DNA from: Dimorphilus gyrociliatus
Lineage: Eukaryota; Animalia; Annelida
Assembly: GCA_904063045.1 (NCBI GenBank)
Contig: CAJFCJ010000006.1
Location: 4,852,408-4,916,407 of the forward strand
DNA length: 64,000 bases
Direction of reading: 5' to 3'
Program-made: the position numbers and the translations under genes
The notes under the pieces: model-generated
Told to the model about the DNA's origin: nothing
Seen by the model: only the letters and a program-made list of their open reading frames with translations
Database searches by the model: none
Shown: positions 30,320 to 40,900 of the stretch, piece by piece
How the letters are laid out: the number at the start of each line of letters is the position of its first letter
Position numbering within the stretch: position 1 is the stretch's first letter

Positions 30320-31636
30320 ATGGCCGCACCTATTCAAATATATAAAAAAACAATATGCTGTTCAATTTGCGGTTTCCAGAAGAAGAAAATTTCGAAAGGT
30401 CAGGAATTTTGTGAAAATTGTCAGCCGGATCGTTGCGAACAATTGATGTTGATTAAAGATTATTCATTATGGCTACAGGAGAATTTAATGAATGAAATGA
30501 ATGAAAATCGTAAGAAATTGAGACGGAACAGAGAGAGGTTATTTACAGACGATGAAATTGACTTTATTCTTGAATATATAGATAAAGAAGAAAAATCAAC
30601 GTTTGAGTTTATTCTTGAGAATGAAAAGGCTCGCTTTAAAAGAGATTTTAACAGGCAAATAAAAGAATTACAATGTAAAGTTGAGAGCTTCTTCCTAGAG
30701 AAACGAGCAACTTTAAAAATATTCCAAGACGATGAACAAACAGAGAATGCAAATTATAAAAAAGACATTTCATTATTAAATAATTCCAAATGGATTATAG
30801 AGAAAAAACTAAGTATAATCTTACGTCATATTACATATCAACCTCGTCAGTATGCTCTGGGTAATTTGAGTATTACTGGAAAATCTGTTCAATTTGTAGG
30901 GTTACAACAAAAGGATATGAAGAATTGCAAAGCTGTAAGGGGTCTTTGCGTATTTAATGAAAAAATATTTATGATAAAATGGTCAAACTTTAATCCAACT
31001 GTTTCTATTGTTAGCGTTTACGATCTGAAAGGAAATTTTATACAAAATTTAAGCAAAACTTCTAATGAATTTACTGCAATAGACGTTACAAACGATGGTA
31101 AATTTTATATTGCAGATATGACAAACAATTGTGTACTAGAATCAGTTGACTGCACTGATTTTAAACCACTTTTTAACATTGACCACCCTCAAGGCATCTC
31201 AATTGGTTCAGATGGTATATTTATAGCTTGCGACGATCCACAAACTTCCAGAAAGCATTTAATTAACATGTACAAATTCAGTTTCGACGGTCAACTATTG
31301 TATCATTTTGAAGATAGCTATAAGTCGCTATTCAAGGTATGTGTGTCTGGTAACAATATCATCTCAACTCATGATATTGACAATGAGATAACAATATTAG
31401 ATACAGTAACTGGTAGAAAGATAAATTTATTACTGGACAAAGGCTATACTCCTATAGGAGTTTGTTCACTTCCCAACGAATCATTCGCAATTGCCAACTA
31501 TAACAAGAAAAGTCTTTCAATTTATGATAAATCTACTTCAGAAGTATGTCAAATATCTCTAAATGAAAAACCTGTTCACTTGGCTTTCTACGAAAATGTT
31601 AACCACTATTTTTTAATATGTCATCTTTTGGAATAA
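30320..31636 (+). CDS. Single-exon TRIM-NHL-like protein: Cys-rich N-terminus, coiled coil, NHL/beta-propeller repeats
   Basis: 438-aa ORF; CxxC...CxxC N-terminus; E/K-rich helical middle; AIDVTNDGKFYIAD, HPQGISIGSDG and PIGVCSLPNE repeats. Confidence 0.7.
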   Translation: MAAPIQIYKKTICCSICGFQKKKISKGQEFCENCQPDRCEQLMLIKDYSLWLQENLMNEMNENRKKLRRNRERLFTDDEIDFILEYIDKEEKSTFEFILENEKARFKRDFNRQIKELQCKVESFFLEKRATLKIFQDDEQTENANYKKDISLLNNSKWIIEKKLSIILRHITYQPRQYALGNLSITGKSVQFVGLQQKDMKNCKAVRGLCVFNEKIFMIKWSNFNPTVSIVSVYDLKGNFIQNLSKTSNEFTAIDVTNDGKFYIADMTNNCVLESVDCTDFKPLFNIDHPQGISIGSDGIFIACDDPQTSRKHLINMYKFSFDGQLLYHFEDSYKSLFKVCVSGNNIISTHDIDNEITILDTVTGRKINLLLDKGYTPIGVCSLPNESFAIANYNKKSLSIYDKSTSEVCQISLNEKPVHLAFYENVNHYFLICHLLE

Positions 31637-35562: not shown

Positions 35563-36286
35563 GTTGATACACCTTTATAGAAGGTTATAAAAATTATATT
35601 ATATATTTCTTTATCATACTTTGAATGCAAATGAAGAGTGAAAGTACAATTTATGACATAGAAACATAAATATCATTGAAACTTTCGAAAAACAATAAAA
35701 GTACCTTGTTAATCAGGAATTTCTATCGTTGCCGGTAAACAAGAACGCTAAATGACCTTGTTGAGAAGACCTACAGAATGTTTTACATATCCACTTGACT
35801 TGGCGCCATAATTCAAAACAAATTACTTTATTGTTTTCTCGTCTATTGTTTTTTTCTTTGCACACTTTAATCATAATTTCACTCATTTTAATGAAAAGGA
35901 GGGAAAAAGCTCAACTTTTAACTCTTAAACATACTTATATTCTTATTTTGCCTTGCAGAATTCGTTTTGCTTACTATGCAAAAATGAAAATATTCTCATA
36001 TTTTCTTCATAAAATATGCCTCTCTTTCCCATTAAATCTCATTTCTTAATGCATAAATCTTTCAAATATATGTATAAATTATAATGTTTGCACTCAGGTT
36101 GGCAAAAAATCCCTTATTAAGCATTTAGAAAATAGTTAACCTTTTGATGAACCAGGTGTATGCGCCATAGAAAATGCTCTGATGATTCATATCCACAAGA
36201 TCAAGCTTTTGAACAGGGCTTGATAAATCTTTGAATCTCTGCAACATGTGTCGATGAATAACAAGTTTCTATCACGACACTAGGGG

Positions 36287-36315
36287 TATATAATGAGTGT
36301 AGAAAGTTCGTCAGT
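36287..36315 (+). promoter_or_regulatory. TATA box plus TCAGT initiator of the secreted repeat-protein gene
   Basis: TATATAA at 36287-36293, TCAGT at 36311-36315, ATG at 36351. Confidence 0.6.
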
Positions 36316-36350
36316 ATCAATCTTCGGTTTGAAGAGAGAAAGAGAACAAG

Positions 36351-37731
36351 ATGAAAAAGTAAGAAAACTTTTAAAAGTTATTTTTATGTTGTTTAATTCC
36401 AAATTTTTTTTTTCAGTTTTATTGCAATCTGTATTTTAGCTCTAGTGGCTGTAGCAACATCTTTCCCATGCAAATCTTTTGATAAAAAAAGGCATGAGGC
36501 TTGTAAGACTGTTTTTTCAAATGGAACTGAATCTGAAGGAAGCGAATGCTCTGATGGAAAAGTTTGCACAGCTCCACCAAATGTTCAAGTTTACTTCTGC
36601 TCCGGAACTGATAATAAGAGACAAAGATGCAAAGTTGTTATTGATGAAAAAGAGGAAGAATTATCTGAATGCCCAGAGGGAAGCGAATGTCTTCTTGAAG
36701 AGAGAGAAAAAGTTGAATGGAGATGTAAATGCGCTGAAAATGACACAGAATGCGAAAAGAAAAGCAGACCATGGGCTAGACCAGTCGATAAAGGAATCTG
36801 CAAACTTATCGTCAATGGAACAAGCAAAGTTGAAAAAGAATGCGAAAATGGTTTAGTTTGCAAAAAACCCGCAGAGGTAAAAGTTTCTGTTTGCAAGAAA
36901 GTTGAGGAAGAAGCAGAAGAAGAAGAAGAAGAAGAAGAAGAAGAAACTGAAGGAGATGAAGATGAAGCAGATGCAGAGACTTTTGGCTCTTGGGAAAGAA
37001 GGAGAGGTGGAGACAGAAGAGTACGCAAAGATAGAAAGAGAGGCGGAGACAAAGAAGAAGGTGAAGACAAAGAAGAAGGAGAAGACAAAAAGAGAGGCGG
37101 AGACAGAAAAGAAAGGGGGGGTAGAAAGAGAGTTGGAGGTAGGAAAGGAAGAGGAGGTAAAAGGGGAGGTGGAAATCAAGACCGTAAAAAGGCCTTCAAA
37201 ATCTGCGATATGTCGATTGATGGACAAAAAGTTGAACGTGACTTTGCTGACTGTGAAGATAATGAAGAATGTGTAGAAGCTACTAGACCAGCTGAAAAAA
37301 TAGTCGAAAAATGGCATTGTTCCTGTCCAGAGGGAGATGAAGAATGTGAGAAAAAGCATAAAAACATCAACAAACCACAAAGACTTGAGCATGGTGTCAG
37401 ATCAAAAAGACCTGGACATGGTGGTAGATCAAAAAGACCTGGACGTGGTGGTAGATCCGAGGGTGACAAGCCAGAGAGACCAGAAGGTGACAAGCCAGAG
37501 AGACCAGAAGGTGACAAACCAGAGAGACCAGAAGGTGACAAGCCAGAGGGAGATGCCTCTGAACCCGCAAGAAATGGAAATAACCAAAACAGATCTGGCC
37601 AAAACAAGCCAAAAAGAAATGAGGGAGATAAACCAGAGAAATCTGATGAAGATAAGCCAAAGAAACGCGAAGGAGGGAAACAAGAGAGACCAGAACATGG
37701 TGACAGAAAACGAGGAGGAAGAAGACAATAA
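36351..37731 (+). CDS. Orphan secreted protein (440 aa) with four Cys-rich modules, acidic and Arg/Gly blocks, and EGDKPERP repeats
   Basis: Exon 1 36351-36358 (ATGAAAAA), intron 36359-36416, then an open frame to 37731. This gives signal peptide MKNFIAICILALVAVATS; internal domain duplication is visible. Confidence 0.85.
37390..37554 (+). repeat. Coding tandem repeats: 27-bp unit (HGGRSKRPG, ~2.5 copies) and 24-bp unit (EGDKPERP, ~3.5 copies)
   Basis: Directly visible, e.g. gaaggtgacaagccagagagacca. Confidence 0.9.
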
Positions 37732-37944
37732 TTAATTAAAATATTTGCTGGATCAAATATTCTCTGTCTTTCTGATTTGATCTGCTTGTTACAAGCAATC
37801 AATCCTACTTTGATAAACAACGTAAACAATTAGTTAGAAGCACAAATACATTGATTAATCATATCGCAACTGTTTTCTCTTTCGTTTATTTCGACAGTTT
37901 ATTCAAATGAAGGACACTTCAGTAGTTTTTAGCTTAAACTTTAC

Positions 37945-40900
37945 TCAATCATTTACAGCACCTTTGTTATTTGGAAAAGAAGATTGTTGAACATCTTCAG
38001 AATCGTCTACTTTCTGATATTTTTTGCGTAGTCTTTCCTTTATCAAGATACCTTTTATCAGCAATTTCCATCTTTCTAGTACTCGCTTTTCCTTTTTCTA
38101 CAAAAAATTTATTTAAATATAATTAGTAAACTAAGTGTTTTATTACTTGAGCTTCTTTCTCTGCCATTATCTCCTGTTCTTCATCCCAAGCTGCAAGTAA
38201 TATGTCTTTGCTCTCCTCCGGAACAACATAACCATCAACACTGTTGCGAATAAATAATATTAATAATATAATACTCTGCTTCCTTAGTTCAAAACTTTAC
38301 ACTGGATGGTTGAAGCCTCCGTGAAAGTCCCAACTAGTTACTGCAGGGACACAGTCAATATTCAACTTTCTACCTACCTTGTTTAGTCCTGGTACTATAA
38401 GAATTCAAAGTTAAAGAGAAGATTAATGGTATTTGACTACTAACGTCTCAAATGTACACCTCCTTTCGGTAACATAGATTCTTTATACAATTCAACATTA
38501 CCATATTGGTTACGAGGAACTCTGCCATTTTCAACCGGATCTGGTGTATATACCTCCGTTTGCCATTCCCCAAACAATTCAGCTTTTGGCTCTTCTACAT
38601 AGACATGTTTCTTTAAGAATTATAATTTGTGTAATTCTTTCAAATATAAAATATTTAGACCTTACTTTATTTTTTCTAGCTTTCACAGTTTTGTATGGAA
38701 TTTCGAAAGGTTTTACCTGCCTTCCCTCTCGAGTCCAAGTTTCTCTTGTATGAAGCTATTTGAAAAGAGGAGAATGGTGAAATTTGAAAAAAATTTGTCA
38801 ATATTTTACCGTATGAACACACTCTCTTACGTATACTTCTTCGTTTCTTATAAAGCCAATAGGTGCAGCTTCTGGAGGGTAAATAGCCTGAAATTTCAAC
38901 AGATGTCGCTTCAGTGCGTACAAGGCATGATTTTTATATTCGTTGATAGTTTTCGGTAAAGGTTCTTCTCTTTTCTTGTCTAAAAAACATAAGTCAATAC
39001 GCATGTAATTAAATCTCCATGACCTTTGACCTACCAAGGATAAGTTTATTTTCATCTTCATCCCTTTTAGACTTTGATTCAAATATTTCCTGAGTTTGTT
39101 TCCACCAGTTATGATCGGCCCGAAGTTTTCGATTGTTAACGTTAAATTTCGCTGAATATTTCTCCGTTAGATCCTTCATTGTATTATCTGAGCATTGAGT
39201 CACTAGATTAATTTCATTCCTTTATTTTGATTTTATATTACTAACCTGGATTAAAGCCGATGACATAAACCAGAGTATTAGAGCAACGATCTTCCATGCT
39301 TGATGTACAATTAACATCCATATTAACAAAATCTACACAAATCCATTTTTTTTCCTTTTTCAAATATACTTCACACCAAATATCTACGTCTATTTTTTCT
39401 TCTAACCCATCACTACTTGATTCAGAAAGAATTTTGATAGGTTTAAACTCTTCCTTAGCACATGTTCCCTTTTTTGATTTCTTTGATTGACTTTTTCCAA
39501 CAACTTCAAAATCGGAATCGTCAGAATTGGAAAAAGTGGAAATTTTTACCGCAGATTTATTGCTTTGTTTCTTATTTCGTATTCTAGTAGAAGATCGTTT
39601 TTTCAACTTTTTCGACGCACTGAAATATTTACTTTCACTATTATTGTCCGTTTCCTCAATGTCGACTTTTTCGTCTATTTCTGTCTCCTCTTCCTCAACA
39701 GGCACATCTTCATCATCTTCGGATGAATCTTCTATTACTAATTTCTTAACTTTCTTTTTAGGTATTGCGGCGGGATTTTTTACGTGTTTTCGTTTGGTGC
39801 TATTCTTTGCTACTAGATGACACTTAGGAATCTGAAGGTAATAGTTTTCTTATACTTTTTTCATAGTAATAATAATCGATGACTCATACTTTTTCTCTAA
39901 AATGAAGAGGATAGAAAGACATGACAAGACGAACTTCTAGACCAAAACCTTGTAATATTCCGATACAACTCTAGAAAATTAGAAAGTATTAAAAGTGTAT
40001 TATTTAAGAAATTTGATTAAAAGCTTACTAAGATATATTCTGTTCGAGAAAATGCCACTCCTCTTGTAATAGTACACTCAAGACGTTCAGCCTGTTTATT
40101 ATAATTAATTAAACTGATAAGAAATATTAAGCTTTGTATGAAATAGTTATTACAATATTTCCTTTCACATTTTCATCTTTTATATTCATCTTTACTATTT
40201 CAGTTATAGAATTAACTAACTTCCTTAGAGTTTCAATACCCCAGTTTTTCATTGCCGTTTTCAAGAATATAAACGAAGGCTTAACTGAGAGAGAAACAGC
40301 TCTGAATATGTCTCCTTTTAGTACATCATTAACATATCTACCATGAGCAAGTAATAGTAGTAGATGGACCTTTAATACAGACAAACATATATATATACTG
40401 TATATAATATTATTTCATTATTATACAGTATATGCTCTACAAACTTTATGCATCCATGAAAATGTGTCTCTTTTATATTTAGCCATCCAATATTTGAACC
40501 ATTCCATCATCCTCTCCTTCTTGCTGTAACAACAACACTACTTTTAAGGGATATTTTTAAATGTCTATGAAAAAAACCTTTTCCTTTTTAATTGTCCTGG
40601 AATATGGTCTAATTTGATGTTGACCTCCTCTGATGGTTTAACGTAATCGTCCTCATTTTCGGCATTTTCCACTTCTTCCCAATCACTACCTTCTGATTCC
40701 ATTCCATCTTTCTTATTCTGCTTTGAGTGAACTTTTCCTTCCATTGCTTGAAGTACATCAGTAACGGATGAACAGTTCATTAGTTCAGGGCAAGACTTGA
40801 TCAGTGCAGGTTTTTTAGGTGTAGAATCATCACTGTCTGTAAAATCTTCTTGTTCTACATCGTCTACTTTTGTTTCCAATGTTGCTTCTTTAACCATTGA

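Follow-up and report, generated by a model that had tools for sequence, protein, structure and literature searches.

A two-exon gene of Dimorphilus gyrociliatus predicted to encode a secreted protein of alternating disulfide modules with an acid-base insert and a charged repeat tail

The window analysed here is a stretch of 64,000 nucleotides (nt) of AT-rich DNA (~32% G+C) from the annelid Dimorphilus gyrociliatus (contig CAJFCJ010000006.1, positions 4,852,408 to 4,916,407 of the forward strand). At window positions 36351-37731 of this strand lies a gene, predicted to have two exons, for a putative secreted protein with four cysteine (Cys) modules (A1, B1, A2 and B2), a strongly charged insert between the last two of them and a charged, repetitive tail. 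The features that a sequence-only reading had described for this locus are all present where it had placed them. They are listed by window position, (+) denoting the forward strand.

36287-36293 (+): TATA-box-like TATATAA, the sole TATAWAW in 36150-36360
36317-36323 (+): initiator-like TCAATCT, matching YYANWYY; the A at 36319 is the candidate transcription start
36351-36358 (+): exon 1, coding portion ATGAAAAA, giving Met-Lys plus two bases of codon 3
36359-36416 (+): intron, 58 nt, GTAAGA...T10CAG; donor AA/GTAAGA
36417-37731 (+): exon 2, residues 3-440; stop TAA at 37729-37731
36417-36462 (+): remainder of the predicted signal peptide, hydrophobic core I-A-I-C-I-L-A-L-V-A-V-A followed by small A-T-S
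36502-36600 (+): module A1 (4 Cys, residues 32-64) with N-G-T sequon and P-P motif; two beta-hairpins in the model
36628-36753 (+): module B1 (6 Cys, residues 74-115), ending W-x-C-x-C-x6-C
36799-36894 (+): module A2 (4 Cys, residues 131-162) with N-G-T sequon
36898-36978 (+): acidic block (residues 164-190, net charge -19), 20 of 27 residues D/E; GAA-rich run
36979-37194 (+): Arg/Lys/Gly block (residues 191-262, net charge +14) with 29 K/R, 19 G and six RGG
37204-37347 (+): module B2 (6 Cys, residues 266-313), E 1.7e-14 to the A+B unit profile
37369-37728 (+): charged Pro/Gly tail (residues 321-440, 120 residues), including the tandem repeats
37379-37457 (+): 27-nt repeats, 2.9 copies (Tandem Repeats Finder, 88% matches)
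37462-37548 (+): 24-nt repeats, 3.6 copies (Tandem Repeats Finder, 96% matches)
37735-37740 (+): ATTAAA, 4 nt past the stop, the only poly(A)-signal-like hexamer before 38100

The gene model consists of an exon 1 with a coding length of 8 nt, not 9, a 58-nt GT-AG intron and a 1,315-nt exon 2, which join in frame to give a product of ~440 amino acids. The start ATG at 36351 has an A at -3, and the length of the intron fits a genome whose median intron is 66 bp and in which trans-splicing has been reported absent (10.1101/2020.05.07.078311). Stop triplets occupy 6.5% of window positions, so that the 438 codons open in exon 2 cannot be put down to chance (P ~1e-13). Judged by its sequence, this is an intact two-exon gene of D. 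gyrociliatus with intact splice sites. The exon-joined sequence was used only for residue numbering, composition and shuffles; database searches and structure predictions were run on exon 2 or pieces thereof.

Upstream, the TATA-like box lies 32 nt before the A of the initiator-like element (position -32). Transcription from this candidate start at 36319 would leave the upstream ATG at 36293 outside the transcript, making the ATG at 36351 the first one. Such pairs number 18 in 64 kb of a single strand, a chance of ~3% per 100-nt target, which makes the promoter plausible and does not prove it. The sequence-only reading had called this a strong promoter typical of highly expressed genes: the two elements are there at the proper spacing, whereas strength and high expression were an inference of that reading only.

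The N-terminus (M-K-N-F-I-A-I-C-I-L-A-L-V-A-V-A-T-S-F-P) is a typical signal peptide up to about residue 18-20, and it aligns with the unspliced signal peptide of a paralog described below, which upholds the earlier claim of a secreted protein. Beyond it, the pattern C-x13/15-C-x5-C-x10/15-C is found in four copies. The regular expression C-x12-16-C-x5-C-x9-16-C gave four matches against a mean of 0.06 in shuffled sequences, and none of the 2000 shuffles reached four. A modules combine an N-G-T sequon with either P-P or K-P; B modules (modules 2 and 4) have an extra Trp and two further Cys in a shared W-x-C-x-C-x6-C ending, in agreement with the modular, periodic A-B-A-B build recognised earlier. 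A and B modules have a common first half, or core (hhalign E 1.5e-4), every module has an even number of Cys, and the 20 module Cys, the B-module Trp and both sequons are in register. The mature chain of ~422 residues contains 21 Cys, the odd one being C21, directly after the signal peptide.

Searched in six frames, the 78-Mb genome proved to hold one paralog, at C6:4517768-4518592 on the minus strand, part of an open reading frame at about C6:4517501-4518607 (-), on the same contig as the window gene and 334 kb from it. The paralog is intronless and encodes 369 amino acids with a signal peptide, six modules (A-B-A-B-A-B), 28 mature Cys and no charged blocks; it is 100% identical to the NCBI entry "unnamed protein product [Dimorphilus gyrociliatus]". 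BLASTP of the window protein against the paralog gave 3e-20, and a profile of the A+B unit matched only two genes in the 78-Mb genome with six unit hits, those on the window gene at E 1e-30, 1.7e-14 and 9.5e-10. Orthologs of the paralog were found at 58% and 54% identity in two Logan assemblies (P0002 and P0003, the paralog being P0001). The window protein fits this group on similarity, on its signal peptide and on its alternating A (4 Cys, N-x-T, P-P) and B (W-x-C-x-C) modules. As far as sequence can place it, the window gene is a divergent, derived member of a small, dinophilid-only A/B-module family. It had been called an orphan, which in the strict sense is wrong because the genome holds a six-module paralog with orthologs in two assemblies; what stands is that no named family matches.

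The family comparison also bears on the modules themselves. In each of the four proteins, A1 and A2 retain the N-x-T sequon despite changes of its middle residue, which argues for real glycosylation in the secretory path. In the middle B module of the paralog family, C5 and C6 are both missing; their joint loss suggests that C5 pairs with C6 and that the four-Cys core is self-contained. By module scores, A1 of the window protein matches A1 of the paralog, but A2 is nearer to paralog A1 and A3 than to paralog A2, so that the scores give no clear unit-by-unit orthology between the two proteins. An origin of the charged insert from decayed middle modules was considered and rejected, since its local alignment to paralog B2-A3 was no better than that of shuffled sequences (p 0.13-0.37).

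All four family proteins have a Cys 9-13 residues before the first module, at the signal-peptide border. This Cys may lie inside the signal peptides of family members; if retained in the mature chains, it would give every member an odd Cys count and make disulfide-linked dimers possible.

Two neighbouring loci were observed in the window. At 38798-39705 on the minus strand, probably extending to ~41000, lie exons of an XPC/Rad4 DNA-repair homolog (BHD_1, E 3e-18; Rad4 transglutaminase-like, E 3.9e-7), which converges tail to tail on the 3' end of the Cys-module gene. Upstream of the Cys-module gene, at 30320-31636 (+), a single open frame encodes 438 amino acids, Cys-rich at the N-terminus and containing NHL repeats (Pfam NHL, E 4.9e-6), and resembles an intronless TRIM/NHL-type gene.

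Searches for a known family gave negative results throughout. Neither the whole exon nor its pieces nor the B modules matched a family in Pfam, and PDB sequence searches with the single protein and with three profiles were blank or non-significant (TGF-beta receptor II, TFIIA). Word searches with region 1-165 of the window protein and with a 145-residue piece found no match in protein collections; the family profile, run against 1.84 billion representative proteins, returned only the paralog's own cluster; and a metagenome scan yielded 211 pattern hits, of which 0 were confirmed. UPAR_LY6, Activin_recp and ecTbetaR2 had no hmmscan match at E <= 10, and PF08917 and PF01064, searched in the genome, matched neither of the two family loci. 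DUF4789 (PF16033) was rejected, as its protein-atlas score of 0.76 is below lead level, hmmscan gave no hit and the family is absent from the genome; a second protein-atlas lookup gave no hit. An EGF-like domain was likewise rejected: B modules do have six Cys with C-x-C, yet they gave only a JAG1-like_EGF2 trace (E 0.044 over 11 residues), and A modules carry just four Cys. With Pfam, PDB, DUF4789 and TGF-beta-receptor models all negative, the statement of the sequence-only reading that it recognised no family stands.

The search of the genome also brought up exons of activin-receptor-type ectodomains over the Pfam cut-off at C12:125826-125975 (-), C1:56815-56982 (-) and C32:138722-138922 (+), the C1 match including an in-frame TAG. 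These presumably belong to the worm's TGF-beta family receptors.

The window protein departs from its family in its charge pattern. Composition and Tandem Repeats Finder confirmed the acidic and basic blocks between modules 3 and 4 and the repeats of the tail, as described earlier. The blocks form a 99-residue, acidic-then-basic insert between A2 and B2 that is predicted to be disordered, and repeats of 54 nt and 18 nt lie within the Arg/Lys/Gly block. The tail occurs only once in the 78-Mb genome. For the mature chain, the fraction of charged residues is 0.49, the net charge per residue -0.01 and the isoelectric point (pI) ~6.2. Both in the insert and over the chain as a whole, charge segregation was above that of 2000 of 2000 shuffles, and the segregation of the insert bears out the description of a blocky polyampholyte.

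From this we tentatively propose an extracellular polyampholyte that would associate by charge, a reading that we favour while holding it somewhat doubtful. The protein would leave the cell with N-glycans on the conserved N-x-T of its A modules, and outside the cell it would act as a near-neutral yet strongly blocky polyampholyte, with half of its residues charged and a pI of ~6. The folded modules could be stable knobs or heads for binding. Within one chain, the acid-base diblock may pair by charge and draw A2 and B2 together; alternatively, it may pair between chains or with charged polymers, which would suit a component of mucus, cocoon or matrix. The odd C21 just past the signal peptide may link chains. 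Coacervation or ion binding, as suggested by the sequence-only reading, is likewise a hypothesis.

The same charges allow for a different explanation, namely a proprotein cut at dibasic sites to release the Cys modules or short charged peptides (hormone-like or antimicrobial), with the acidic block keeping the cationic part neutral up to the time of processing. The protein contains 30 dibasic pairs and two R-S-K-R sites, and its acidic block beside a cationic one is reminiscent of pro-pieces in cationic antimicrobial peptides. However, the number of pairs fits the composition (23.9 +/- 3.8 expected; 136 of 2000 shuffles reach 30), and the tail has 8 pairs where 9.9 are expected. The only two R-x-K-R sites both precede Pro, a poor context for proprotein convertases, and the four G-[KR]-[KR] sites all fall in RGG-rich low-complexity sequence, with none (0) ending a repeated peptide unit. 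The paralog family, moreover, is without charged blocks. A proprotein with many dibasic sites, one of the options of the sequence-only reading, is on these counts improbable.

AlphaFold2 modelled A1-B1 (90 residues, with a six-row alignment of module units) at a predicted local distance difference test score (pLDDT) of 84.9 and a predicted template modelling score (pTM) of 0.59; the modelled chain consists of beta strands throughout, four to a module, with hairpins between C1-C2 and C3-C4. We infer from it that each module may be a self-contained beta-hairpin pair pinned by two disulfides, to which B modules would add a third, C5-C6. Stacking the repeats as alignment rows gave a pLDDT of 85, against <50 for the same modules with a four-row alignment of the whole protein.

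Foldseek comparison with the PDB and with viral models returned nothing at E <= 0.001. The top structural match was Argos (PDB 3C9A), below significance; a three-finger neurotoxin ranked fourth, also non-significant, and the A+B unit profile aligned colinearly, but without significance, with the ectodomain of TGF-beta receptor II (E 2.5-4). Argos domains have been described as a four-stranded "two-finger" version of the three-finger fold, and ~1800 secreted Argos-like proteins, one from an annelid included, were found in protostomes by PSI-BLAST; fly Argos has long flexible regions, one of them a 119-residue insert inside a domain (Khilji et al. 2025, PMC12514838). The signals from Argos, TGF-beta receptor II and the three-finger toxin are weak but point the same way, and the architecture is alike: the four-stranded, two-hairpin disulfide domain of Argos-like 2FTX proteins is seen here in a predicted model, and their secretion is matched by the predicted signal peptide. 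Sequence relatedness to Argos-like 2FTX proteins did not show, as the family profile returned only its own cluster from the 1.84 billion representatives and Pfam and PDB sequence searches were blank. A two-finger fold of the modules is a lead that we would put at somewhat less than an even chance, and no membership is claimed.

If the lead is followed, the main rival to a polyampholyte becomes an Argos-like soluble binding protein, whose two-hairpin modules would grip a ligand from outside the cell, for example a secreted growth factor of EGF type. The basic block would hold this trap on a heparan-sulfate-type matrix, and the acidic block would mask the basic block. It draws on Argos topping the structural matches, on the colinear receptor match and the toxin at Foldseek rank 4, on the breadth of the secreted protostome group with its annelid and the long flexible inserts of fly Argos (PMC12514838), and on the three A+B units of the paralog. 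But every score is under significance, the family profile met none of those proteins among 1.84 billion, the Pfam receptor models miss both loci, and there are 4 or 6 modules where the Argos-like group has 2-3 domains. We regard such a binding protein as unlikely, though worth keeping in view.

Several points weigh against the polyampholyte as proposed. The composition (one Tyr, no Ser-rich block, no mucin-like Ser/Thr/Pro region) lacks the known features of worm and mussel glues, which are Tyr/DOPA-rich (DOPA, 3,4-dihydroxyphenylalanine) with Ser-rich blocks, as well as those of mucins; with a single Tyr and no Ser-rich block, an adhesive of mussel or sandcastle type, as raised by the sequence-only reading, is unlikely. 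The charges of the tail are well mixed and unsegregated, which favours an expanded, non-sticky chain. AlphaFold prediction of the whole protein from a four-row alignment was poor (pLDDT 38.8), so that confidence in the fold comes solely from the module-row alignment; and the structural match to Argos is far under the level of a shared fold, with Tx33.1, the other solved two-finger structure, unscored. The window protein itself is absent from the searched protein collections, which probably means that it is unannotated and has no bearing on whether it is expressed, and no ortholog of the window copy was seen.

The last two points, together with the near identity of the repeats in DNA (88-96%) and a GAA run typical of slippage, would also suit a young, fast-drifting duplicate with little or no function, its low-complexity sequence having grown by replication slippage after release from constraint. 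Against such drift stand the 438-codon open frame in AT-rich DNA (P ~1e-13), the 20 module Cys, B-module Trp and both sequons kept in register, the intact splice sites and a TATA/initiator pair at the right place, and we consider it very improbable.

The polyampholyte reading has a bolder form, in which a new disulfide module, possibly a miniature two-finger, is split by a self-neutralising acid-base diblock to make a single-chain coacervating secretion (mucus, cocoon or temporary glue). We regard this as a long shot; if true, it would be a one-gene glue design without DOPA or phosphoserine in a meiofaunal worm. Very little is known of the proteins in the secretions that small marine worms use for gliding, for sticking and for making egg cocoons, and an undescribed, confidently modelled disulfide module joined to an acid-base block with strong charge segregation offers a testable candidate for a secreted material. 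The locus also shows how a simple family of six-module genes can produce an offshoot with low-complexity sequence. Should the Argos-like lead prove correct, a strongly diverged branch in annelids would be added to the recently described two-finger group. As the evidence stands, this is one more lineage-restricted secreted Cys-rich protein, and its interest is modest.

Among known systems, the closest are the six-module paralog and its orthologs, which share with the window protein the type of signal peptide, A/B modules, Cys spacing, N-x-T, P-P and the W-x-C-x-C ending. The paralog differs in having six modules, no intron, no acidic or basic block and a short basic tail; the window gene encodes four modules, a 99-residue charged insert and a 120-residue repeat tail, and its 58-nt intron follows the first 8 coding bases. 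The Cys spacing of the B modules (x13, x5, x11-15, x1) resembles that of the first five Cys in short three-finger toxins, although the modules are without the third finger, the CC doublet and the closing C-N motif of the three-finger fold of snake toxins, Ly6/uPAR and TGF-beta/activin receptors. Like Argos and the 2FTX proteins, the window protein is predicted to be secreted and built as an array of small, four-stranded, all-beta disulfide domains, with flexible regions as in fly Argos, where one lies inside a domain; the Argos-like group has 2-3 domains, as against 4 or 6 modules here. The cement proteins of sandcastle worms are alike in coming from an annelid, in being secreted and in having acidic and basic stretches able to pair by charge. 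In these cements the opposite charges sit on separate proteins and are provided through phosphoserine and DOPA, whereas here both blocks lie in one chain and the acid is Glu/Asp.
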